A DNA stretch of 59,241 nucleotides, counting the filler, from Bipalium vagum (lineage: Eukaryota): assembly GCA_037834085.1 (NCBI GenBank). It is 3 parts of 3 records of this genome, joined end to end, with 100 filler letters (N's around TTAATTAATTAA, not from the genome) between each part and the next. Parts side by side here need not be neighbours in the genome. Positions count along the whole stretch, not along the records: positions 1 to 17,323 come from JBBMKC010071266.1; 2 more parts are not named here. One strand, 5' to 3'. The first letter of the stretch is position 1. Every line of letters starts with the position of its first letter. This document shows, piece after piece, positions 1 through 17,323 of the stretch. The notes below the pieces were generated by a model, which saw only the letters and a program-made list of their open reading frames with translations, was not told where the DNA came from and ran no database searches. The position numbers and the translations under genes are program-made.

Positions 1-98
1 TGGATTGTACTTTGAGGAATGATTGTGATTTTTTTTTGTTATTCTTGTAATTGAATATATTGAATAAAAACGCTAATTACTTTTGACTCAACCTATTA
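1..98 (+). mobile_element. mariner 3' end fragment
   Basis: GLYFEE* transposase end followed by a TIR-like aattacttttgactcaacctatta. Confidence 0.55.
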
Positions 99-492
99 GA
101 ATTGACATAAGAATATGTAGTAAAAAGAATATATTTATTATCGTGTATTAAAAATAGTGTTTTTACTTTTTTTTCTCATATTTAACCATTAAGCTTAAAC
201 TGAATTATTTATTAACTTTATTTTTTTAGCAGCTTTTTAAAATTTAAAGTAATAATAATTTTAAATATATATTTATAATATTAAAGATTTATGATATTTA
301 TTGTTTTGCAGATTTTAATGTAACATCCTATAAATAAAAAATGGGAATTTTTTAAAACTTAATTAACTTTAATATAATATACAAATTTTTAAAATGAATC
401 ATTTTAACTTATTAACCAAGTCAAGAATCTTTAAAATAATACATAGAAGTAAGATAAACATATTAGTATTCTTAAATTATTTACATTTTCAG

Positions 493-514
493 AAATGACT
501 ATCAAGATCGTATT
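493..514 (+). CDS. Candidate 5' coding exon of the pLGIC gene
   Basis: Acceptor ttttcag at 486-492. Either ATG495-MTIKI then donor GTATTG at 510 (phase 0), or NDYQDRI then donor GTAAAT at 515 (phase 0). Both join exon 2459 in frame. Confidence 0.4.
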
Positions 515-3500
515 GTAAATTTTTACAATAAAAACATACATTTAGGGAAAAACTTAGATCTATTAAATCTGACAGTTATGGATTAATGCTATTAATTCTG
601 CCAATCATATTATGCAACCAATAAAATCTGATAATCATATGACAAAAAATTATTTGATTAAATGATTCTTTGTTAAACCAATCTAGGAATATAAGATCAT
701 CTAAGAAAGCTTCCCTTTTATCTTTATCAGGGTGTTATTTTCTCTTTCCTAATGTTTTAGACTTTATTATTGTCTTTAATTATCTTATTTTAGGAAAATT
801 ACTGTGCAGTTAAGAAAATATAATAAACTCATTTTCAAGAAAAATATAAAATTTTATTTAACTATCGAATTTTTAAAGAGATATAATAGTAGAACTTCTG
901 AAGGTGGAATAAGTTTTAGCTAAATTACCAGTCGTTTAGGAAGAAATCTTTTCACTATTTTACGCAAGTGGAATGAGTAATGTAGCATCGTCAAACTGGT
1001 AGTGAACAAAATAGAAGTACCAACAACAGTTAAAATACCTTCATCTCCTAGCTGTTGGAGACAGATTTATGCCAACTACTAAAATTGACATAAATTTAAA
1101 AACGAACCTCAGGGAAAAGGTAGAAGATTGCGTAGTATTTGTGTGTGTTAATACTGTCCAGATTGATTGTTACTATTGACATTATATCATGAAGCCGCAA
1201 ACGTACCTGATATCAAGAAAGACAACGTTAAAGTCAAGAATGGAATTGCATCATCTTTTGTAATGAATCAAGATACTGTTTATGGCAAGGTAATGGATAC
1301 TTGAAGCCAACAACAAAAAGCTACAATTAGTTACACCTTGTTTATGAGATGGACTTCTATATCCTTTGGAATCCGATCACTCCTAGTATTTATCTAGTAT
1401 TTATTCAGTATTTATTGACTGCTCTTCGTTACATAGTTGATATTTTGAGATCCGTACTTCTTTCATTAATGAAAACAATTCCAGTCAGTATTTTTCAACA
1501 GTACAATAAACACTTCATATTGCCAGTATATCAGCGAAGTTTTAGCAAGAATCAGAAGTTGACTATATCTTGACCATTATATTTACCAGATATTTATCCT
1601 ACTGAACATATGTGGAATATCAGCAGTTGTCAATCACGTTGTTCTTTTGTAATGAATTAAACAATCACCTTCAATAAATATGGAACGACATGATTGATAA
1701 AGAAATAAATCTTTTAATTAATAATATGGGTTTTTAAAGTACTAAGATGATAATTACTTCGTTCAGAACAAGAAAATCATTAGACAAAATGACCATTAGA
1801 TCTGAAACATGATTCGGATGTTTAGGAGGTTTTTAGAGTTTTAGTATCATGTAATGGTGTTGGTTGTCATATCTAGTGAGGGTAGTATAGTTTTTTAATA
1901 AATGAAGGTACTGGAGTTATGAATGTAATGCATATATTATCAACTACTAAAAATTTATCATCATACAGAAGATGGTTGTGATAGTGATCGATAAGGATAG
2001 GTAGTCGATGGGAGAAAGTATGTATTTCAACAAGATTTATAAGACAAGGAACTCTCAAGCATGGTTTTATGAACTTAACCTATCATTGGTCACCTAATTT
2101 GTGACCTAGCAACCCTGAGTGAAATACGATCTATTGTTATTTATGATATATAGTTGTGGCAAAGGTCGAAGCAAAAAACATTCAGTACTATCAAGTCACT
2201 ACAGAATGCTCTCAAAAAGTGATAGTATTTTCGAATCGGAAAGAGGTAAAATGATCGGTTTCGGTCGAGGAGAAAAGCGGTTTCGACAGCTAATGGAGAT
2301 GATATCGAAAACTCTTATTTTGTAGACTTTCATATTGCTGTATCTAAATAAGCTTACTAACTCGTTTTATTTGTTTTATAAAAATTCCCGGTTTATCTCA
2401 AACATCCTGTATAACAATGAAATTTAAAATCTTTTAATTTTAATTATTATTAATTCAGACTCGGGTCTCCCTAAGATGTGTTTTTCTCAAAATATATAAC
2501 ATTGATACTGTAAATGAGCAATACTTTGCTGAAATATTTCTTCAAGCTAAATGGAGAGAACCTTTGCTGGACAACGAAGCAAATATAAAAGTACTTTTTG
2601 TGTCAATAAAATTAAAAATCAGTTAAATATTTATTTAAAATTTCTAAGAGTTCTTTGTTAAATAAAGTAAAATTTTCTTATTTGAAAAATATGGTTGGAT
2701 GATCATCTATTTATTCATAAAAATCAAATAAAGTTAAATGAAATTAAGAAATATTTTTTAAAAATTAAAAAACACTTCAATATTTCAAAATTAAATATAT
2801 TGGGTTGTTACACATGAAATCACCGATTTTTATCTTAATTTACAAAAAGCCATGATTTTGTCAAAAACTTATATATTTAGTACAAAATATTGTAATTAAC
2901 ACAACATTGCCAACGTGTGACAAGGTTATTTATTCAAAAAATGTAAAAATTTCCATTTCAGAATCTATGAAACATCGAAAAACCTTTTCGACCATAGGTT
3001 GATCAGCGAAGTTCTTTTGACAAGTAAATAATTCAATAATAATTATTGTAAAAATTAATTTACTTTACAAAGTATGTTTAAAAAGTTTTCTCAGTGACAG
3101 TAAATAGACTACTTCTTACATTTAGAACAATTTTATAATCACTAAAATATATAAAATTTGCCGATCCCAAAAATATATAGTTTTCATATATCTCTGTAAT
3201 TTGTCATTCAAAATTTAGCTGTTGTTTTAGATTTGAATTTATTTCTGCCAGATTTTAAAATATAATTTCTATGGACTTCTATTATTGCGTTCGATTTTGT
3301 TTCTTATTTAGAAAAACTTCTCGGGAAACACATCAAATGTTAACCAAAGCTTATAAAGATGATGTAATGACGGAAAGAAATAGATACAGATGTTGTGCAT
3401 TGTTTAAAGAAGAATTAATGACAAAGAACGGTTTTGACGCCCAAATGAGGTGATTACCGAAGAAAAGGTTCTTCAGGTGTGCTTGAAGACCGTCGTAAAG

Positions 3501-6500
3501 ATGTCAGAATGCTAGAAAACGAGATTGGAACGTAAAAGCAATGTGCACACAATATTGACTGAAAAAATTGGAAAAAAAACTTGCAGCACGTATTGTTCCC
3601 AAATTCCTCTCTGATGATGAACAGAAAAAACCTAGACAAAAATGTGAGGAATTTCTGGAAGCCTTCGAACAAGATTCATCTTATATTGAAAAATTGTCAC
3701 TGGTTTGTTTCGAGCCAGAAACCAAAAGATAAAACATGGAATATCGAGGGAAATTTTCACCAGAAAAAAAATTGCACACATGTCAAAGTTGAAAATCAAG
3801 TTCACGCTCATCACCTGTTTTGATATTAGAGTTAATTCACTAAATATTTGTTCCTAAAGGCCAAACTGTCGATCAATATGTTTACGCCGATGTTCTTACA
3901 TTATTTGAAAAATTACGAAAGAAAATACCAGATTTGTGATAATCAATAAGATCCCATATTCTACACGATAATCCAAGACATCCTGTGTCACTATTGATCA
4001 ACGATTTCTTGTCAAAGCGGCCAGTTACAGTTACCAAATTCTTATTAGATCTATCTACGCAATTTCTCTCTTTAAGAAAGTTGAAATGTGCCATGAAAGG
4101 GACTGTTCATGAGTTTAAGGAAGAAACAATTCAAAATCTAATATCCGTCACACCTGATGAATAGGAATGTTTTCTATCCCTAGTGAAAAGACAGATTCAA
4201 TGTATTAGTTGTAATGCTGATTATTTTGAAGATGACAAAGAATATTAATGTTTTAATAATCTGTTGTTAGTTTTTTTATTTAAGATAACTGACAAGACTT
4301 TTTGGACATTCCTTTCTGTTTATAAGGAATATAGTTTTCTGACTTTAATAAATGCAAGTTCTGACAAAATAGGAATTATTAAAACACAGATTTACAGAAA
4401 ATAGTGAAATAAGAAATATTAAGAAATAAAACTATATTTTAATGAAATTTCTCATTCAAACATTAAAAATTAAGCTATTGGTTTAAAAGATTTTGAAATG
4501 TAAAAATCCAGGTAAATAGAATTCAATCTTAAAAAAATATTTTCACAAATTGCTCAAAATGGCTTCTGGCATATGAAATAGATTAGAAATATAAGGCAAA
4601 TTTAATTAATGGCTTTTATATTTAATTGAGGAAATTTTTTAGAAAAAGTAATAGCTACTCTTTGATGGTCTCTCATTTTGATAGGTTGCATGAAGTCGAT
4701 TCATACATAGCCACATTTAAAATCATAGTAAATCATTGAACAAAAATTTTCTCATAATTTTCATATTTTATTTATATCTCAAATGTTAAATTCATTAAAA
4801 AACTAATTAATTTATATTTATTCATTATAATTCGAATCAAATTTTATAATAGTATCTTTAAAACGACCCAGATATCTCTTAAGCATTTGATTTGACAAGT
4901 TTCCCATATAATCCACGTATGATTGCTCAGTAATTTTAAATTAATACATAATATATATGATTTATGATATTTATATGATCTCTGATAATACTGTATTAGT
5001 GAACTATTTTAAATTGGTATAATTTCTAAACAAGATTTTCTTTTATTTTCAGTTTTTAATTGGTTGTAGTTGTAAATTTTAAATAAAAAATATATTTAGT
5101 AACCGTATATTTTATAACACAATTTCAGAGTAAAGATCTTCTAAAGTTTTGGAATCCAAAACTAAATGTTGAAAATCTGTTCAAGGAACAAAAAGATCTT
5201 GTTTCTTTTGAAGTTACCTATCCTGAAAATAACGGTGTTGCTTATTTAGTTCAAAAAAGGAGAATGAAAGCCATATTTCATGAGACATTAGAACTGATGC
5301 AATTTCCATTTGATTGTCAGGTATATAAAATAATTAATGGTCTACTACTAGTTTATTTCAGTTGCTTTTAATAGTAAATTTAAGTCTACCTTTTGTCTTT
5401 TTTTTTAACAAGTTTATTATGGATTAAGACAAAAACAATTGACATATCACAAACCGGTAGAATGCTTTCAACTGATATATCTGAAATAAGACTACTTTTA
5501 TCAATTTCTTTCATTAATCAGTTAGTAGAAATATAATAATAATGATTCGTTTAATTATATGGAAGTTGTCAAACACAAATTGTTGTCAAGACAACTGTCC
5601 CCAGGTTCTATTAATAATTATATTAATATTTCGTTCCGAAGTTTTCTATTAGGATCTATTTCGTTTGATTACCATTTTTTGTTTTTTTAGAATGGTAATT
5701 TTCTGTGATTTCGAAATATTTTTTTATATAAGGCTTTTCAATGATAGAATTATTTCTTATTAGATTTTCAAATGAACCTAAATTTAAAGGCGATAAAAAT
5801 CCTTCATCAATTTTGGAGTCACTCAGAAAATCTGATAATATTATAACTAAATAATTTTTAAAATACACGGTGTGTCATATAAGTAACCGAACTTTTGATT
5901 TAAATCATATACAGTCCCCATCAAAAGTCTGACCCCACCTTTAAAAAAATGTAAATTCCTATTGTACATTTGAAAAGACGCATTAATTCCAAAAAATGTA
6001 TATATTATGTACAACATGAATGAACATTGTAAAAAAAATTAATATTTTGTTATCTGTGACTGCCGCAATATGATTAGGCATTGACTCAATTAAATGTTTG
6101 CAATAGTCAGGCGAGATATCATTTCTTCACACTTGATTAATTTTAATTTTTAGGTTATTAATATATGTTGGATTGAGACTTGAGACTTTTTTCTTCAATT
6201 CGGACCAGCAGTTTTCAATTGGTCGGGATAATTTCCAGGCCATAGACAAAGTACCTCCATATTGTTAAGAGAGATAAATTCTTTTACGGCCTTGGCTGTA
6301 TGACAAGTGACCTCATCATGCTGAAAGATTTTACCAGTTTCAATTGGCAGAATGTGTTGGTTTAATATGTCGATGTACTCCGTAGATCTACTATTTGTAC
6401 CAGCAGGAACAAAACAAATTACCTACATCATCATATGACATTGATGACCAGACCATAACGAAAGGAGAATGTTTTACATTCTTGACAGTATATTTTGGAT

Positions 6501-9500
6501 CAAACCTTTTGCCGTCAGGTCTCCAGACGCGTATAACATTGGGAGAGAATAGCTGGATTTTATATTCGTCTGAAAAAATAACTCTGTGCCAATCTGTGGG
6601 CTCCCACTTCTTATATTTGTTACAAAAGAAAAGGCGGTTTTTAACATTCTTTAAAGAAAGTCTAGGCTTTATTACAGGCCTTCTGGAGTGCAACGAGAAT
6701 TCGTGTCTAAGCCGCCGAGAAATAGTACTCATGCTTACTGGTGCATCTGGAGGAAGTTGTGATCTAATTTCACTTATTGGTGCAAAAACTCAAGTACAGG
6801 ACAACTGATGAATCAATCTATCAGTTTGAACTGTTGTTACTTTTGGCCTTCCACATTGTTGTTTGTATTTGAATGATTTATCCAAGTCATATCGTTGAAT
6901 TGAACGTCGAACAATTCCCCTTGACACATTCATTCTCGTCGCAATTTGTCTCTGCGAATAATCTTCGTCGCGCAAAATCAAAATTTGAGCTCTTTTTCAG
7001 CATATAATTCAGCCATTATTTAAACAAAAGTATTTATTTGACAAGAATAATATTATATAATTATGCAAAATTAATGAAAAAACAATAAATTGATATAGGT
7101 CAGAGTTATATAAATACCTATATCTAAATTGATATCATACCAATGGATAAATAATGAAATCAATTCAATTTTTGAAGGTGGGCTCAGACTTTTGACGGGT
7201 TTCATTTGTTTAAACCAATTTTTAATTGAAAATTACATCATTCACCTTTGAAAATCATCAAAATTTATTTATTTTCGGATAACAGGTTTGAATTCTATTT
7301 GCATTTAAGTAAAGATATATATCATCCTTTTGTCATAGATTTACAATGGATCAAAGAGCGAATATTAAATTTTTTTTTAAATCGGGAAAAAAATTACGGA
7401 GACATGAATTGCTTCTAAAGGTTTTAGTGATGATTGATGTCTCGAGCACAGATTTATACATTGTTTACACGATTTTAAAATGGCCATGATGATTTAAATG
7501 ACGATGAAAAGCCCGGACGTTCAAATGCTGAAGGACGTCCAAAATTGGTGGGAAAAGTACGTTAAATCATTGCTTCTGGTGGTAAAAAGACTATGAGAAT
7601 GTTAGCAGAAGAATTAAATACAAGTGTCTTTACCATTTGGATAATTTAAAAGAAAGACTTTGGATAAAGAAAGGTTTGTGCTAAGTTTGTTACTCATGCA
7701 ATAAATGAAGACCAATAAACAACTCATATTAAATATTGCATAGATCTCCTCAACGCTGTTGAAAACAAGTCAGATTATATTGATTCAATTATAACTGGTG
7801 ATGAGAGGTGGGGTTGGACAAATCAGGCGTAAAAGTGGTAAATGGAAGTCATTGAGTGAGCCAAAACCTAAAAATTGCATTTTTCAAAAATTAAGATAAT
7901 GTTTATTACTTTTTATGATTCAAAAGATAGTCCATAATGAATTTGTTCCAAAAAATCAAACTGTTAAACTGTTAATGGGGAATAGTATTTAAATGCTTTA
8001 CATCGTTTTTGTATGGTAAGGCTAGGTCTACTGCAACTAAGAGGGTGAAGTAAAATAATGAGTGATAACACTAAATTTTATTAAACGGCAATAAATATTT
8101 TAAAACTCAATTTTAATCAATTCGTAACAATAAACAATTTTTAGTTCCACAAGAAATTTTATGAATTTTTCTGATTAACACTCTACGAACTCTTATCAAT
8201 TCATGGCAAATTGTTGAGACAGGTGCCTCTGATATCAGGATACTTCTTTACTTCATCAAGAGCTCTTATTTTCCCATTTAATATATAAAAGTGAATTTAA
8301 TATTTCTCAACATTAGGGAAATAATACCCTCAAACAGAAGAAAATATAACTTTTTTAAAAAAATACATTTTAATATTATTATATTAACATTATTCTAAAA
8401 AAATATTCTATTATTAATACAACTGTATTATTTCATTAGATAACATTAGAATTTAATTATTTATTTTAAACTAATAAAATAAATAAAAAATTAAAATAAA
8501 AGCATTAAATAATTAAGCTTTTCAAATTGAAATATCAAATGTATATAAATATTTTATCCAACAAATTCAAAATGATATAAAATATTATTTTCAAATGTTG
8601 TAGGTGTCCATCTTTTAATTTTTACGGCTTATGGTTTTCAAACCACAACAATTTTTCAATTTTTTTATTATGATTACCCAAAAATATTTATAAATATATG
8701 TATTTTCGTAAAGGCTAATCAAATCAATCAAACGAGATTTGTATTGAAATTGATATTAAATAAATGAGATATTCAAGAAAATATGTAATATTGAGAGTTC
8801 ATAAATTAGTTGTCATTGACAATGTAACGTGAAAATCGAGAAACCTTTAATAATATATTACACCAATTTTTAAAAATTTATTAATACAAATGATTCAAAC
8901 TAAAATTTAGTAGCATAACCATTTGAAGCGATAACAGCTGCACATCTACAAGGCATAGAGTCAACAAGTTTAATCAATTTTTTAAAGGAATTTTAATCCA
9001 ACTTTCCTGTAAATTTCTAAAAGAAATCTTGTTTTTTGGATATCTTTTTAACTCGGATGGTACGATCAAGCTCTTACCATAAATGCTCAATTGGATTAAG
9101 GTCTGGACTCTGACTAGGCCACTTCATAACAGGGATTTTGTTACGTTCTAGCATTTGTTTAATAACGTTGGATGTATGTTTGGGGTTGTTATCCTGCTGA
9201 AATATCCAGTCTTCTTTCATGGTTTCATATGCAAATGGAATCATTGTATTCTTAATTATGGTATCATATATTTGCATGTTCATGATGCCGTTTATTTGAA
9301 TAAGAGCTCCGACTTCATCTCTGGTAAACCAACCCCACACCATGACATTTACTTCACCGTGTTTAATAGTCGGAACCTGATATCTTACGTTAAATCTTTG
9401 GTTAAAAGATCGACGAACATATAGAATACCATCACTAGATAGCAAATTAAATTTGCTTTCGTCATTTCGGACCATCTTAGACCCATCTTGAATTGTTCCT

Positions 9501-12500
9501 TCTTTATGAAGGCGAGCAAATTCCAATCGGGCCATTTGATTTTCCTTCGATATAAAAGCTTTCTTTCTGGTACCCCTTGCAAATAGTCCAGCAGATTGTA
9601 GACGTCTTTTTACAATAGAAACACTGGTTTTATTTGATTCTTTGGAATGACTTTGATTAATTTCTGTGCCAATATCGACAGCAGTTTTTAGTGGATCTGC
9701 TTTTGAAGAATGAATAATGATGCGATCTTGATGAGCAGTTGTTTTCCTTGGTCTTCCAGATATTGGTGATTATCTGTCACTTAAGCCCAAAATCGCACGA
9801 AACACTTGCTTGTGTTCTTCCTCTTTTAACTGCCATAACAACTCGTTTCTTAATATCATTACTATTTTTTGCTCTCACCATGATTGAAACTAAATAGTTT
9901 TAGACATTATTTTAAGAAAATAGTTTATAATCTTACTATAAATTGATTATAATTGATTATAAATAAAATGACAACTAATTTTTGAGCACTTGTTTTTAAT
10001 GGTTTATGGTTTTTTATTATTTAAAATTTTATAAATTTTAAATATTTTTTAGAGTTTATTTCTTTGCATATGTAGGAAGATTTTTAACAACAAAAATTTA
10101 ACATAATTATCTAGTAACAGTTACATTTACTTATGAAAACTTAAAATTCGTGTGTCAACTAACTTTTGAGCGCTAGTGTATATAATACATAATTTATAAG
10201 TGTACAATATATAAAACAAAATTTCTAAAGCTAAAAAACGCATCAAAATAATGAATATTAAAAAAATTTTTTTTGAAGAAATCTATACTTTTTATAATTA
10301 ATTAGGATTTATCAATTACAGTCTCTACTGAATTATCATCTGAAGAAGTAATTCTTTCGGAAAACGAAGAAGACATTAGTAAAATTAATTCTGGAAATGT
10401 TATGGATTCTCAAGAATGGATCATGTACAATCATGTGGAGGTAAACTTTTATGTTACTTTATCAAGGCAGTTGGTAAAAATATTCATGTTTGAAAATTTT
10501 ACTTATATTTATTATAAATTTTTGTAATAGTTATTGTATTGATTAAGGTGGAATTGAAAGATCTTGTTAATGACTGCAATATCGGGCCAAAGTCGAGAAA
10601 AGCCATCACTTTTACATGTCGAGCAAGTCGTCGATTTGGATATTTTATAGTCAATTATTTCATGATTAGCTCCATGTTCTTTATATTAACCTTTTGTAGT
10701 TTTGCAGTGTCTGAAAATGTATTTGGTCGATTGCAGTTGAGTATGTACACTTTATTGACAAGTGTTACTTTCAAAGTAGCTGTAACCAATACTCTTCCGA
10801 AGGTTCCTTACTTAACATATTTGGTACGAAATGATTTTTTATCATTAATATTATTATTATTTAATATTATCATAATACATTTGTGGAGACTCCCAATATT
10901 TCTCTATAAAGTGCATATAAAGTAAGATACAAAGAATGTAGGATACCAAACTATATCCTTGGATGCAAATGATTGACAATATGTTTTTTCAATATCATTG
11001 AGATCTTTGAATTTCCTTCATTTCAAGAAGTGGACATTGATCAAATTAGCTTGAAATCTGATAGCACTAGTTCTGAACTATATACTGGATACATATGGTT
11101 TCAATGTCGGGACTAAAACATTATCTTACTAAAGAATGACTCTTTTTCCATTGATTAATTCTTGATACAGTTGATGCTTAACAACGTACATTCTATCGAT
11201 TTGTTTATAATATATACTACGGCAATAATAGCCTACGAAATTACCTTGAAATAAATTAATCTTCCATAGTTCAACTAAACGAATAACATTACCTTTTTAA
11301 TGAAGTTGCATCTTTTTGGGATTTTTATTTCTGAATTCATTGATTTGTCATATCTAGATTCTGGTAGAAACTCGACTTTTTGCCACATAATTATTTTTAG
11401 GAAAAGAATATCATGAGAATCTTGCAATAGTTGACTGCAATTATCTAATCGTCTATATTTTATTGTCAAAATTTCATAGCTACATTTTATGTTTAAAGTA
11501 TATATGATTTTATTTAAGTAGTAATTTATTTGTTTAAATATTGAAATATTGACTAAGTTTTTGAATTTCAATAAATTAATTTTGTGATTAAGATGACTTT
11601 ACATAATTTGAGATAAGTCCACCTCTGACCGAATGCCAAATATGCAATTTTGCCCACTCCTTACGGCTTTGACGTTACTTAAAATATAGTAAATGTTTTC
11701 TTAACGCAACATATCGTTTTAAAGAAAAACTGCCTAAACTTTTTTGTGCCCAAAGTTTACTAATTGTTCTTGCAGTTTGCTCATAAAATTACCGTAGATA
11801 CTCGAATATAAGTCGAGGTAAAAATATGTCTGGGTAGTTTCGTCTTTCGTACATTTATAAAATAACAAGGAAAAAATGTCAATCTTTTGATACTTTATTG
11901 CAAAGTATTCGTAATAATATTTATATATTTTTATTTACAAACATGGCATGATAGGTAACATTTATTCAAAACCACAAAATTCGGAATCCGAGTATGATTG
12001 AAGAAGTTACAATGCCTGCTCATTAGTCATATGGTCTGAATAGAAGTCGTCATCACCCGATTCGTCATAATCTTCGGCAGCGGTGGTGTAATCTATCCAG
12101 AGTATGTCGTCTTCAGTTCCATCCATCTTGTTTGATATCCCGGTCTAAAACTGTTATGACTCTTATATAAGTCGACCCCATTTTTTTCATTAAATTTTAT
12201 AGAAAAAAACCTCGACTTATATTCGAGTATCTACGTTAATGAGAAATGGAGCTTAAACTGGAAACTCGGCTCCAGAGCGATAACCTCTTAATGCATTGTT
12301 TATCTCTTGGACAGAATTGACTAACTCTTAGTTTACCTTCAACGGTTCCTTGGTAATTCAAGTTCTTAACCAACTTTTGATAACCTCGTTTTGATACATC
12401 GAGATTAAATGTTTTCTTCATTATCTTAATAACTTCACGCCAGGTTTTACTAGCACAACGAAGTGCTACAAATGGTATTCTACTTTCAATCGAGCTAAAT

Positions 12501-15500
12501 TTAACCGGTAGTTCTAAAAAAAACTAAAATTAATTTAAAATTTAAATAAAACCATCAATATGAAATCTATATTAATTCATTTAAACAGTTCTAATTTTAA
12601 GGATATATAATTATATAAAATTAATTAAAGGTGAACAGACTTAAATAACGTTCGGTATACATTTCAACACTGTATGTTCTTTGTTTAAGTTCTTGAGAAT
12701 TTTTGGCATTACAATTCTTACTTTAAACACTTTGTTTAAATACTACCAAAAATATTCAATTGACCTTAGCTATTTCAGTACCTTTTTTGTGTAGTGAGAT
12801 ATTTTTCCTAGATCACATTAAGTTTTTAAAATAAGAAATTCTGGATAATAATAATAATAATAATAATAATATATATAATAATAATAATATATAATTATAA
12901 TAATAATAATATGTAATAATAATAATATATAATAATAATAATATATAATAATAATAATATATAATAATAATATATAATAATAATATATAAATATAATGTT
13001 TAAATGTAGAGCAATCAAATGATGTTTTAAATTTTCCATGTAGAATATGATAAAACAGGTATTCATTAATTTAAGGAATTAGATAAATAATCTTTTATAT
13101 TATTTCTTTATATTAATCTTTAGAAATTAAGTATATTTTAAAGAATTATAAAAATGATCGTCAAGGTAATTAATTTTTCATTAATTTTTTATGATTATAA
13201 TAAAATAAATTATTAAAAATATAAAAATTATTATACTTAAAATAATAATTTTTCATTATTTTTTATTAAATTAATTAAAATTATAAATTTGCTTATTATA
13301 TTAAGTAAATTTTAAAAATTGCAAATTTTTCATTTTTCTGGGGTGTTCGTTGCATATATAATTTTAAATTTGTTAAATGAAAAAACTGTGTTTTTGTATT
13401 TTATATTGGTTTATGCAGAAATACAGGGTCTTTCAAAAGAAGCTTTTCTACTTTAAGTCACTATTTCTCCGCACATAAAAATTAAAAAGCCAAGTAATTT
13501 TATTAATACCTTTATTTAAATACAGATATTACAAAAATTTATATTTTAAATATGATTTCATTAAAATGACCACCTCTGGCCTTACAAGTTTGGGCTATTT
13601 TATGGAATTTTGCATAACTTTTTGACATAAGTAAATTGAGAGCATAGCGATTTGTTCCGAAATTTTGTCTTTGAGTTGTGTAATAGTTTTTGGTTAATTA
13701 ATATAAAATTTATCTTTTAGATATCCCCATAAGAACTAGTCTGGAGCCATCAAATCGGGAGATCTGGGAGGCCAATCAACATCACCGAAACGTGAGATCA
13801 CACCAGATGGAAAAGTTTCGTGTAATAATGCAATTGTTTTCCTATTTGTATGGGATGTGGCACCATCTTGCTGAAAGTAAATATTCTCCACATTAAAATC
13901 ATTCAGATAAGGCTTAAGGAATGTTTCTATCATGTGTCGATATTTCTCTCCCGTTACTGTAACCTGCAGCCTTTTCGAAAGAGTATGGATTAATTACACA
14001 TCTTGCCCATATTCCACGCCATACAGTAACTTTCGACTAAAGCAACCCTATGTTTCTTCATTCAAAACATAGGGTTGCTTTGTTGCCCAAATTCGACAGT
14101 TTTGTTTATTAAAACACCTTCACTCAAATGAAAATGACTTTCATCAGTCATAATGATTTTTTTCCAAAAATGAGGATCCGCAATTGATCTTTCTAACAGC
14201 CAATTACAATAATTCAGGCGACTTTGATGGTTTGATTCTTTAAGCTTCTGAACTACGGTAAGCTTATAGGCTTTTATATACAAATCTTCAAACATTATCT
14301 GCGACAAACGAGGTTATGAGAGGTTTAATTCCTGTGCTCTATGACTGATTGAGATGCATTTATTGTCTTCAAATGCTTCCTCGTGTACGTGCAATATTTT
14401 CAGGTTTCCGCGCAGATTTTGATCTATCTGCTACCGAGCCAAATGCTTGAAAAGCATTAACCAGACTGTAAATTGTTGGTTTTGATTGACATTTGTTTAT
14501 CCAAAATTTTGCATTTTATTTTTTAATGGTTACTGAAATTGAACTACCGCTTTGATAAAATATTTTGACAATTTTTGTCCGTTATTGCATATTATAACGA
14601 CCCATATTTAATTTTCAAATGTTTAGTTTGAATAATGTTAAATATTAATTTATTTAAACCAAAACTACTTAGTATTTAATATGTTAAAAGTAGTAACGCT
14701 TCCTTTGGAAGAACGTGTATATAGAAAAATATATAAAATTCCATTCCAAATTATATATAATCCCATAAAATTTATTGACTAACATAATAATCAAAGTAAA
14801 AATTATGTATTATTTTAAAATTACACATTTCATTAATTTTGAATCCAATTTTAATTATGAATAATGTTTAATATGTTTTGTAACATTAAATTCTACATTT
14901 TAATGGTAAAGTCAATAATACATTTGATTTCTAAAAGTTATGGTTTTCTAAAATAAATTAAAAATAAGCTATACCCTAATTATTTGAAAATGCATTTAAA
15001 TATAATAAAACTTTAGAACCTTTAAAAGAAAAAGAGAATTATATAAAAATTTTAAGTAATTTCAATGCATAACCATAATTCCGAAAGATTGTGACGTTAT
15101 GTTTATAAGATGAAATTAAATGGAAATGGAAAATTAACTTTTAATATATTACAAACAGGAAATGCTTTATATTTTTCGGAAGCTTGAATTTTTTCAGTTT
15201 ACTATGAGCTTTAAAGAAACCAGAATTATGACTTTTATTTAGAAATTTACAGATGTATGAAATTTATATATTATTATTTATTTAATAGTTCCTTTAACAT
15301 TTAATGTCGCACCAAAAATTTTACTTGTTTCATAACTTTTATCCGTTTATAAATATTACTATTAATAATAATGTTATATAACGTTTAGGATCAAGCAATG
15401 ATTTCTAATATACTCATGATCATGTTTATCTGTTTTTGGCATTCTTCAATATCAACTCTTTATTTGAACTCAATGCAGACTCCAAATATTACTACTCAAC

Positions 15501-16954
15501 AGATATGGAAAATTGAAATAGTTCTTATTCCATCATTCTTGACGTTTTACAGCATTGGAATTTTGGTTTTTGTCTTGGTTATTTATTTCGATGTAAGCTC
15601 GTTTATTAATATCACTTCAAAAATAATATCCTAAAATTTTATTTTTATAAAATGTACTTTTAATTTACATCGTTTCACTTCTTTTTTGACATTGTAAAGT
15701 TCAAAAAATACATTCTTTTGGACAGTCATTTCTTTTCATGAATATTATGCATGAATATTATTTTATTATTATTTTTATTTTAGTGTATAACTAAATTCTG
15801 AAATTGTTTTATTGATATTCGACTGAAAAATTTTACTAAAAATTCTTTTTCACATTTTGTTTCATTTTTATTTAATGAAATTGAACAATCTTCATCAATG
15901 CTTTTTAAAAGTAAATTTTCCTGTTCTCATGTTAATTTTTTCATTACAGCTGTCTCTTCTTTTTTTCAAAAGTTCTTTCTTTCAGATACTTCTTGATTAT
16001 TTGAAGTACCCTGGTCTTCTTGATATTAATTATCTTTGAAATCTTTGATATGGTTAGAGTCAATAATTTTTTTTTCTTTATTCATTACTTGTTTCTCTAT
16101 TCTTTGAAGCCACTGGGTTAGCTAATTACCTTAATTTTTAAATAACTGAAGTATTTTTAAAGTATAAATAAACAAATTACCTACTTTAAATAAATTTCAA
16201 ATAAATCTTTACAATGTGAAAATAGAGATTATTTACATCGGTTTTTAATCAGTTGAAAATTAAAATAATTTAACAATTTTAGAAATATTTTAAAAATCAG
16301 TAAATATAAGTATTTTATTATGAATTGCAATATGCGGAATCTCAAAAAGCGTAATTGGTGCACTGCGGAATCAAACAGCTCAGATTCGAAGATGAGGGAC
16401 TTATGTGATAAAATCAATTGATAATAAAGAAATCACTTTTATACGCAATAAAAAAAATTCTTTTCTTGATATTATTATAACGTGAGATGAGAAATGGATA
16501 TTGCTTGAAAATCAATTACAATCTTTTCAGTGATTGTGTCGTGTTAAATGTTCTCAAAAATTTCCGAAATAATTATCACAACCGTAAAAGATTATGGTGA
16601 CCGTTTAGTGGTCTATCACCAGTCTCGTTCATCAAAATTTAATAAATTAGGGTGAGACCATTACTGTCAACAGATAAATTTAAAAATAGATGTAGTTTCG
16701 AAGATTTTTAGTTCATTGAAAAGATCTTAAATCAGTAAATAAATCTCAAAATTAGCTAAGAATAAAATTGTTCTGATATTAAACGTGTTGTGTTACCAAA
16801 ATCATTTTAGAAAAGTTACAATTATCTATTTTTAAACACTTTAATATATTTATTAGAATACTTTTAGGCTGGTAGTCGAAGAAGAAAGATGCAATCTAAA
16901 GATTTAAACTTTCAAAGTAGACTAAATGGACATTTCAATGGTACTGTAAGTTAA
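495..16954 (+). CDS. Cys-less pentameric ligand-gated ion channel subunit (Neur_chan_LBD + 4 TM), spliced gene, about 346 aa; 5' end uncertain
   Basis: GT-AG exons 2459-2590, 5129-5320, 10306-10440, 10548-10823, 15389-15592 and 16868-16954 join in frame (all phase 0; 341 aa + stop). Motifs: IDT..E..F.AEIFLQAKWREP, WNPKLNVEN (loop A), LELMQFPFDCQDL (Pro-loop), QEW, pre-M1 RR, M2 RLQLSMYTLLTSVTFK, LPKVPYLTYLD. Candidate first exon at 493-509 or 493-514. Confidence 0.9.
850..2411 (+). mobile_element. Decayed Tc1/mariner fragments (probably two elements)
   Basis: Eroded PD..PTEHMW motif at about 1575-1620, a second WxPNxxDL-like motif at about 2087, and TIR-like aaacatcctgTA at about 2400-2411. 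Confidence 0.45.
2459..2590 (+). CDS. pLGIC exon (beta1-beta2)
   Basis: ttcag|...|gtactt; TRVSLRCVFLKIYNIDTVNEQYFAEIFLQAKWREPLLDNEANIK. Confidence 0.9.
2801..3030 (-). mobile_element. mariner 3' fragment
   Basis: TIR-like tgggttgttacacatgaaatcaccg; minus strand reads LVTRWQCCV (mariner C-terminus). Confidence 0.55.
3271..4248 (+). mobile_element. Decayed mariner transposase
   Basis: N-terminal YCVRFCF..KTSRETHQMLTKAY HTH, LHDN and C-terminal DYFED; many frameshifts and stops. Confidence 0.75.
5129..5320 (+). CDS. pLGIC exon (loop A to Pro-loop)
   Basis: ttcag|...|gtatat; SKDLLKFWNPKLNVENLF...KRRMKAIFHETLELMQFPFDCQ. Confidence 0.92.
5866..8010 (+). mobile_element. Decayed mariner element interrupted by a Tc1 insertion
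   Basis: TA-CACGGTGTGTC TIR at 5866; transposase remnant from ATG 7346 (MDQRANIKF, CAKFVTH, IITGDE); 3' truncated. Confidence 0.7.
5912..7203 (-). mobile_element. Tc1 (DD34E-type) element, non-functional
   Basis: Imperfect TIRs CAGTCCCCATCAAAAGTCTGACCCCACCTT / AAGGTGGGCTCAGACTTTTGACGGG; ORF pieces with GRPKVTT, VIFSDE, VMVW and PIENCW. Confidence 0.9.
8795..10178 (-). mobile_element. Tc1 DD34E element with IR/DR-type ends, non-functional
   Basis: ORF 9074-9535 with DESKFNL and FQQDNNPKH-34aa-E (WPSQSPDLNPIEHLW); terminus TA-CACTAGCGCTCAAAAGTTAGTTGACAC at 10178; inner repeat copies at 9969-9989 and 8795-8815. Confidence 0.9.
10306..10440 (+). CDS. pLGIC exon (loops B/F)
   Basis: ttag|...|gtaaac; DLSITVSTELSSEEVIL...MDSQEWIMYNHVE. 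Confidence 0.9.
10548..10823 (+). CDS. pLGIC exon (loop C, M1, M2, M2-M3 loop)
   Basis: Lies within ORF 10539-10925; taag|...|gtacga; ITFTCRASRRFGYFIVNYF...RLQLSMYTLLTSVTFKVAVTNTLPKVPYLTYL. Confidence 0.92.
10930..12520 (-). mobile_element. Heavily decayed Tc1-like remnant hosting a pogo insertion
   Basis: Minus strand reads EWAKLHIWH..W.Y (Tc1 pre-catalytic segment) at about 11610-11660; transposase-like sequence on both sides of the insert. Confidence 0.4.
11792..12236 (-). mobile_element. Non-autonomous pogo-family deletion derivative (445 bp)
   Basis: 28-bp TIR CCGTAGATACTCGAATATAAGTCGAGGT (only the terminal base mismatched), TA on both sides; internal GISNKMDGTEDDILW acidic transposase tail. 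Confidence 0.9.
12846..12997. repeat. Degenerate (AAT)n microsatellite with AT interruptions
   Basis: Read directly from the sequence. Confidence 0.9.
13424..14717 (-). mobile_element. DD41D (rosa-type) Tc1/mariner element, non-functional
   Basis: Imperfect TA-flanked TIRs; IMTDESHFHL; FQQDGA...WPPRSPDLMAPD with 41 residues between the Asp residues. Confidence 0.88.
15389..15592 (+). CDS. pLGIC exon (M3, short loop, M4)
   Basis: tttag|...|gtaagc; DQAMISNILMIMFICFWH...IEIVLIPSFLTFYSIGILVFVLVIYFD; two hydrophobic helices. Confidence 0.9.
16868..16954 (+). CDS. pLGIC terminal exon
   Basis: ttttag|AGSRRRKMQSKDLNFQSRLNGHFNGTVS*; AATAAA at about 17075. Confidence 0.75.
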   Translation, partial: AGSRRRKMQSKDLNFQSRLNGHFNGTVS

Positions 16955-17251
16955 AGCTTTTAAACAAAATTTCACAATCCACTGATTATTGTTTTCTTTA
17001 AATTATCACAAATGTTTAATCTTATTCTCAATTTTTTCTTGAAAATATATATAGTTTATTTATTTATTTATTCAAATAAAATGAAAATCCGGATAATGAA
17101 TAGATATTTTTATTAAAACCTCAGTCAATATTGTTTGACCTATTTCATAAAGAACCTCTTACCTATGTCGAATTTTTATCATGATTTCTTTCTCCTTTTT
17201 GATCTACGTCTTTTAATTTATTTTATTTTTTATTTTCGTTCATTGTAAATA

Positions 17252-17323
17252 CAGTCAAACCCGTTTAATATCACGTCGTTTAATAACACACTTCGCATTA
17301 TATCATTTTATATTTTAGTACCA
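17252..17323. mobile_element. Tigger/pogo-like terminus running into the gap
   Basis: TA-CAGTCAAACCCGTTTAATATCAC with subterminal repeat gtttaataacac. Confidence 0.5.

Follow-up and report, generated by a model that had tools for sequence, protein, structure and literature searches.

The DNA analyzed here is a stretch of 59,241 nucleotides from the flatworm Bipalium vagum (the window; assembly GCA_037834085.1), and its first part carries a split gene for a pentameric ligand-gated ion channel (pLGIC) subunit that lacks the Cys-loop disulfide. Positions 1–17,323 of the window correspond to one entire contig (C71266, JBBMKC010071266.1; GC content 21–36%) of an assembly of 440 Mb in 272,664 contigs. 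An earlier note on this DNA had proposed that the channel is inserted in the membrane upside down, with a cytosolic ligand-binding domain. The window exons were searched one at a time in the unspliced form, and P0001, a database protein of 358 residues, was used as the full-length proxy. The coding features are listed below.

495–509, plus strand: speculative candidate for the first coding exon, reading M-T-I-K-I from an ATG to a GTATTG donor, phase 0.
2459–2590, plus strand: exon E2, beta1–beta2 of the ligand-binding domain, 70% identity to P0001 residues 15–57.
5129–5320, plus strand: exon E3, beta3–beta6 and the Pro-loop, with FPFD at 5303–5314 and Glu (5282–5284) at the position of the first Cys-loop cysteine.
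10306–10440, plus strand: exon E4, beta7–beta9, with Leu (10309–10311) at the position of the second Cys-loop cysteine.
10548–10823, plus strand: exon E5, beta10, the pre-M1 cluster RASRR (10620–10634), M1 (10638–10709), M2 with Leu 9' (10728–10784) and the M2–M3 loop, 68% identity to P0001 residues 166–258.
15389–15592, plus strand: exon E6, M3 (15389–15460), a 19-residue M3–M4 loop with NIT at 15485–15493 and M4 (15518–15589), aligning to P0001 residues 259–326.
16868–16954, plus strand: exon E7, the post-M4 tail (P0001 residues 327–345 and the family post-M4 motif), with RRR-x-M-xx-KD-xx-F at 16877–16912, NGT at 16937 and the stop codon at 16952–16954.

Exons E2–E7 (2459–16954, plus strand) were all open, bordered by AG and GT and in phase 0. 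They aligned collinearly and without gaps to residues 15–345 of P0001 (15–57, 60–120, 121–165, 166–258, 259–326 and 327–345, from E2 to E7) with 40–70% identity and no frameshift or stop in the alignment, so that only about 14 N-terminal residues were left unaccounted for. The predicted exon chain is not the product of chance, and the gene is apparently intact and riddled with transposable elements. The 5' border of E2 was common to at least 18 paralogous exons in the genome, and the E6 donor, placed after ..YFD, was kept in six out of six paralogs examined. A conserved last exon was not detected among the paralogs by tblastx; E7, which reads RRRKMQSKDLNF, was validated via external relatives, since it carries the post-M4 motif of the clade described below, and this motif also places the gene in that clade. 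The start M-T-I-K-I, noted earlier at 493, is present with its ATG at 495; the exon was not conserved in the upstream regions of the paralogs. In P0001, the counterpart of the first exon is a hydrophilic N-terminus of 14 residues. Between positions 1 and 2458, no ATG exon combining a signal-peptide-like core with a phase-0 donor was found.

Single window exons gave only sub-threshold Pfam matches (e.g., weakly to PF02931 at E = 0.11), and a match of E2 to DUF7060 (E = 0.13) was dropped, as it was absent from the full-length relatives. Those relatives reach or approach the Pfam cut-offs for both the ligand-binding and the transmembrane domains. P0001, to whose residues 15–190 the ligand-domain exons of the window align, scores 35 bits on the ligand-binding domain PF02931 (cut-off 26 bits). 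The profile of E5 and six paralogs matched the transmembrane domains of GABA-A beta3 and the glycine receptor (GlyR) in register (PDB, E = 6e-10), and the profile of 91 family members matched GlyR alpha1 from beta1 to M4 with E = 2.8e-62. The alignment-based AlphaFold2 (AF2) model of the P0001 monomer had a predicted local distance difference test (pLDDT) score of 92.8 and a predicted template modeling (pTM) score of 0.87, whereas a single-sequence AF2 run reached a pLDDT of only 42. The model contains beta-strands over residues 14–193 forming a beta-sandwich, then M1, M2, and M3, and finally M4 and the tail as one continuous helix of 68 residues. The best Foldseek matches of this model were the GABA-A and glycine receptors (E = 1e-21, TM 0.68–0.75).

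The Pro-loop motif F/Y-P-x-D, located between beta6 and beta7, is represented in the window by FPFD. In the family profile alignment, in register with GlyR alpha1, both Cys-loop positions flanking FPFD are occupied by other residues, Glu and Leu, which bears out the disulfide loss claimed earlier; the window gene has no Cys pair spaced by 13 residues as in a strict Cys-loop, and no conserved Cys pair was found anywhere in the family's ligand-binding domain. The window exons encode four transmembrane helices, M1–M4, with M4 aligning to that of GlyR. The pore-lining M2 retains Arg 0', Thr 6', and Leu 9', and the residues preceding it match neither the PAR pattern of anionic channels nor the GEK pattern of cationic ones. 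The aromatic residues of GlyR loop B align to non-aromatic residues in the family. The predicted product has a full pLGIC fold with a minimal M3–M4 loop and may form a ligand-gated pentamer.

The window gene almost certainly belongs to the metazoan "Cys-less" pLGIC clade. This Pro-loop receptor clade was described by Jaiteh, Taly and Henin in 2016 (PMC4795631), and its schistosome ligand-gated ion channels by Johnson et al. in 2023 (PMC9874803); both papers are silent on signal peptides, topology, the short M3–M4 loop and the conserved post-M4 tail, and later papers that touch on the clade likewise take its domain as extracellular and leave signal peptides and topology aside. In the latter study, two planarian homologs, which may not belong to this exact family, were expressed in mechanosensory neurons and gave seizure-like movement on RNA interference (RNAi). 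An exhaustive HMMER search with the E5 profile recovered 127 cluster representatives at E ≤ 1e-10. The loop signature F-x-E-x-LEL-xx-FPFD-x-QDL-S/T was present in nearly all of the top 150 matches, and the window gene reads F-H-E-T-L-E-L-M-Q-FPFD-C-Q / D-L-S across the E3/E4 junction. The flanking cysteines were absent in all inspected members. The clade ranges over flatworms, molluscs, annelids, nemerteans, brachiopods, cnidarians, amphioxus and sea urchins, with named members from the flatworms Fasciola, Schistosoma, Opisthorchis, Macrostomum and Cichlidogyrus, and from Tubulanus, Owenia, Lottia, Patella, Gigantopelta, Lingula, Hydractinia, Branchiostoma and sea urchins in other phyla. Among named proteins, those of Schistosoma, Opisthorchis, and Fasciola come closest to P0001 (41–43% identity). 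Like the published clade, the window gene has a polar and then a hydrophobic residue in place of the two cysteines, keeps FPxD and has neither PAR nor GEK before M2, and its family occurs in the same taxa (flatworms, molluscs, annelids, Branchiostoma, sea urchin, and a cnidarian). Nothing sets the window gene apart from this clade, and only the reading of its topology differs from the papers.

The genome holds at least 20 Cys-less paralogs with conserved phase-0 exon borders. The paralog contigs include C116045, C139370, C256022, C27618, C196021, C15027, C204955, C245518, and C195876. Some paralogs are compact, with introns of about 70 bp, others are spread over more than 5 kb, and the paralog on C234494 has exons 2 and 3 within a single open frame. 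Five of the family proteins (P0004, P0009, P0022, P0059, and P0075) are predicted at 1400–2700 residues with 3–19 copies of the M1–M3 region; these are probably tandem gene arrays fused by gene prediction.

The family differed from canonical controls in the M3–M4 loop and in the tail following M4. The median M3–M4 loop had 16 residues in the family and 98–104 in the controls, and the loop or its flanks contained two Lys/Arg residues versus five to seven. The median post-M4 tail reached 50 residues (minimum 18) versus four in the controls; in those taken from databases, tail length was measured with an M2–M3 landmark. The first 15 tail residues included five Lys/Arg in the family and none or one in the controls, and the overall composition of the family tail was 19.5% Lys + Arg and 14% Asp + Glu. 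The tail opens with a motif, approximately RRR-x-M-xx-KD-xx-Y/F, conserved from cnidarians to amphioxus. The window gene, with its 19-residue loop and post-M4 motif, shares these clade features. An excess of Lys + Arg on the side of the ligand-binding domain was observed in 48 of 49 members as opposed to three of nine controls, and the N-flank of M1 was more positive than its C-flank, again in 48 of 49 members. The tail of one relative, P0104, additionally matched DUF4706 (E = 8.5e-7).

The N-termini of the family also departed from those of the canonical receptors. All 49 full-length representatives had a hydrophilic segment of 10–250 residues, often acidic or of low complexity, before beta1, and in longer members such N-terminal extensions reached about 630 residues. 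The signal-peptide score, calculated as the best 9-residue Kyte–Doolittle mean within the first 35–40 residues and hence a crude heuristic, had a median of 1.09 in the family versus 2.79 in nine intronless canonical pLGIC open reading frames (ORFs) of the same genome, in which signal peptides were obvious by eye. A signal-peptide-like core was found in one of 34 family members (3%) and in 82 of 108 canonical flatworm and spiralian pLGICs (76%; Fisher p = 5e-15). These controls came from the same kind of databases as the family, so annotation errors do not explain the absence of such cores from the latter. Four uninterrupted family ORFs on short, transcript-like Logan contigs had in-frame stops upstream of the ATG, which indicates that their hydrophilic N-termini are complete. 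In P0096 (locus L096, 272–1867, on a metagenome contig), a WW domain (E = 1.7e-10) precedes the ligand-binding domain within a single ORF. The WW domain is a cytosolic interaction module.

Two other possibilities were rejected. A mitochondrial presequence was ruled out as a general explanation because many of the N-termini are acidic. A hydropathy scan covering three transmembrane lengths of flanking sequence found no fifth membrane helix, either N-terminal or post-M4, apart from three ambiguous internal segments among about 70 proteins; the tail is, moreover, highly charged.

Several members showed further peculiarities at their ends. An amphipathic helix-like motif, L-xx-L-xxx-I/L-xx-N-T, lies 20–35 residues before beta1 in many members (e.g., P0065, P0079, and P0108), but compact flatworm forms such as P0001 and the window gene do not have it. 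The motif may correspond to the canonical alpha1 helix or else serve in assembly. P0112 starts with M-A-C-C, a possible palmitoylation site. Some of the proteins P0108, P0112, P0104, P0035, P0045, and P0067 have N-terminal extensions of 300–630 residues or Ser/Asp-rich C-terminal tails of about 550 residues.

The closest solved structures, GlyR alpha1/alpha3, GABA-A beta3, and GluCl, share with the family the fold and the register of both the ligand-binding and the transmembrane domains. The anionic Cys-loop receptors also share the basic pre-M1 cluster, Arg 0', Thr 6', Leu 9', and the M2–M3 loop LPK-x-x-Y. In contrast to these receptors, the family has neither the Cys-loop disulfide nor the signal peptide, and the loop-B aromatics are replaced. 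The M3–M4 loop of the window gene has 19 residues where theirs has about 100 with basic flanks, and the charged post-M4 tail is 28–144 residues long or more versus their four or so. With bacterial GLIC and ELIC, the family shares the Cys-less Pro-loop, the minimal M3–M4 loop, and a subunit size of about 320–360 residues; its compact flatworm members, like them, lack the N-terminal alpha-helix. Both bacterial channels carry a signal peptide and a periplasmic domain. Unlike the family, they keep positive charges in the M3–M4 loop and have no post-M4 tail, and sequence comparison places the family closer to the eukaryotic anionic receptors than to either of them.

The same genome contains intact intronless genes for canonical anionic-type pLGICs, in contrast with the intron-rich Cys-less paralogs. 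Their ORFs of 433–500 residues have clear signal peptides and the PAR motif, and their best named relatives come from flatworms such as Protopolystoma, Dicrocoelium, tapeworms, and schistosomes, which identifies the organism as a platyhelminth. They lie at loci L081–L093 on contigs C245452, C242292, C109930, C62808, C66038, C97517, C210192, C148956, C195463, C186740, C137557, C156910, and C203181.

An inverted topology, with both termini and the ligand-binding domain in the cytosol, is the best-supported reading of these data, and we consider it probable. With slightly less confidence, we extend it to the whole Cys-less clade from Cnidaria to amphioxus, which would be upside down relative to every characterized pLGIC and would consist of pentameric channels gated by intracellular ligands. 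Judging from the sequences, the clade lacks the signal peptide and probably also the extracellular ligand-binding domain typical of the superfamily, and this trait spans Cnidaria, Spiralia, echinoderms, and amphioxus.

The following course of events may be envisaged for such a channel. In the clade devoid of the signal peptide, the ligand-binding domain of about 190 residues would be synthesized and folded in the cytosol. M1, with its N-flank about three charges more positive than the C-flank, would then enter the membrane as an N-in signal anchor; the missing signal peptide and the flank charges, by the positive-inside and charge-difference rules, would together make N-in the default orientation of M1. 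The ligand-binding domain, the M2–M3 loop, and the post-M4 helix would face the cytosol, and only the tiny M1–M2 and M3–M4 loops would be exposed to the exterior or to the lumen of an organelle. The charged cytoplasmic domain, canonically located between M3 and M4, would in effect have been shifted to a place after M4, and the disulfide would be dispensable in the reducing compartment. A ligand or ion in the cytosol would open the pentamer, which would pass current through either the plasma membrane or the membrane of an organelle. A classical transmitter is an unlikely ligand because the canonical loop-B aromatic residues are absent. If the inversion is clade-wide, we are mildly inclined to see the disulfide loss, the signal-peptide loss, and the shift of the charged domain to the C-terminus as one coordinated change.

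Not all arguments originally put forward for the cytosolic ligand-binding domain kept their weight: the inference was strengthened by the family N-termini and the tail, while the sequons and the basic clusters before M1 and between M2 and M3 failed to discriminate. The ligand-domain exons of the window indeed have no N-x-S/T among 15 Asn, an observation weak by itself (chance about 0.1), and the NGT near the C-terminus was confirmed. The NIT sequon (15485) is present in the 19-residue M3–M4 loop as described earlier; it lies 8–10 residues from either helix. Efficient glycosylation needs a minimum of about 12–14 residues from a membrane helix. The window sequon is too near to the helices, so a PNGase F shift could fail even under the inverted topology. 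The basic clusters also proved to be where the earlier note saw them (RASRR at 10620, two Lys around the M2–M3 loop, and RRRK at 16877), and its caveat that canonical pLGICs also have a pre-M1 Arg was borne out. As those at pre-M1 and M2–M3 are canonical too, they do not discriminate between topologies, and the part of this argument that stands is RRRK, which belongs to the clade-wide motif and is followed by a long charged tail. Of the two traits sought in the relatives, the lack of signal peptides was borne out by the single signal-peptide-like core among 34 members and the four N-termini bounded by upstream stops, whereas the retention of M3–M4 sequons was not.

Several points weigh against the inverted topology. 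All evidence on topology has been drawn from sequence. The M1 flank difference was negative in the canonical controls too (9 of 9). GABA-A beta3 has RLKRN before M1 and LPKIPY between M2 and M3, and GlyR alpha1 has basic residues just after M4. Sequons were not enriched in the family M3–M4 loops (9 observed versus 7.3 expected, p = 0.28) and were only mildly depleted in the ligand-binding domain (41 versus 50.6, p = 0.08). The signal-peptide test was crude as stated above, many family N-termini derive from gene predictions, and one Schistosoma rodhaini gene model, unlike its orthologs, has a hydrophobic stretch near the N-terminus. No more than 2.4 kb of contig precede E2, and the first exon of the window gene has not been located; a search for a conserved first exon upstream of 15 paralogs (tblastx/blastn, P0001 N-terminal peptide) returned only low-complexity matches. 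Finally, among the public sequencing runs searched, only one contained the sequence; it was not an RNA run and was probably the one from which the assembly was made.

Most of these points would fit the canonical topology, in which the ligand-binding domain and the post-M4 tail are extracellular and either the signal sequence was missed in an unannotated or off-contig 5' exon or the N-terminus is translocated in an unconventional way. The unlocated first exon, the hydrophobic schistosome N-terminus, the M3–M4 loops without sequon enrichment, and the occurrence of pre-M1, M2–M3, and some post-M4 basic residues in canonical receptors all agree with it, and the literature treats the domain of this clade as extracellular (PMC4795631, PMC9874803, 10.64898/2026.05.05.723003). 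We nevertheless regard it as rather unlikely. A missed signal sequence is difficult to reconcile with the hydrophilic starts of the four ORFs preceded by in-frame stops, with the contrast in signal-peptide-like cores between the family and the controls, and with the WW domain fusion in one member. N-terminal extensions of up to about 630 acidic or low-complexity residues lie before the domain in some members, and the conserved charged tail after M4, combined with the M3–M4 loop stripped of basic residues, is not expected either. As for the unconventional route, we know of no case of N-tail translocation in which an N-terminal domain exceeding 200 residues crosses the membrane folded and without a signal peptide.

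A further reading is that the window copy, among at least 20 paralogs, has fallen silent or is decaying, and that its features carry no functional weight at this locus. The missing RNA run, the unlocated first exon, the many paralogs (some on tiny contigs), and the introns of 2–5 kb packed with transposon remnants speak for it. It seems improbable, since each of the six exons has an open frame, phase 0 and canonical splice sites, the conserved motifs, including FPFD, Leu 9', and that following M4, are intact, and the alignment to P0001 is free of frameshifts and stops.

The introns of the window gene contain decayed remnants of Tc1 and mariner transposases on both strands, as follows.

3259–4161, plus strand: mariner-type transposase remnant in intron 2, Mos1 HTH_48 at 3259–3450 (E = 2e-6), frames broken downstream.
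6391–6981, minus strand: Tc1-type transposase remnant in intron 3, HTH_Tnp_Tc3_2 (E = 6e-8) and HTH motifs.
About 7313–7990, plus strand: transposase-like by eye, no Pfam match.
9074–9535, minus strand: Tc1-type transposase remnant (DDE_3) in intron 3, PF13358 (E = 1e-10).
13736–14307, minus strand: transposase-like by eye, no Pfam match.

Directly 3' of the E5 donor (about 10831–10896), a stretch of about 40–65 bases recurs with 78–93% identity on at least nine other contigs, in tandem on C160324, and is a dispersed or minisatellite repeat. The low-complexity poly-Tyr/Ile open frame at 12818–13066 (minus strand) stems from an AT-rich microsatellite and is not a gene.

To our knowledge, every pLGIC studied so far, from bacterial GLIC to the human GABA-A receptors, senses its ligands outside the membrane. 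An inverted pLGIC had not been proposed in any paper returned by the literature searches; the clade itself is already known and uncharacterized, and the reading of its topology as inverted throughout appears to be new. This hypothesis is directly and cheaply testable on any cloned ortholog. If it is true, these channels must be assayed in inside-out patches with ligands from the cytosol, and not with transmitters applied in the bath. The members from parasitic flatworms have been proposed as drug targets, and their value as externally accessible targets would be affected. An inverted topology would explain the loss of the Cys-loop disulfide in the clade and would mean that the fold of the neurotransmitter receptors has been re-used, in many invertebrate phyla, to sense signals in the cytosol or to form a channel in organelles.

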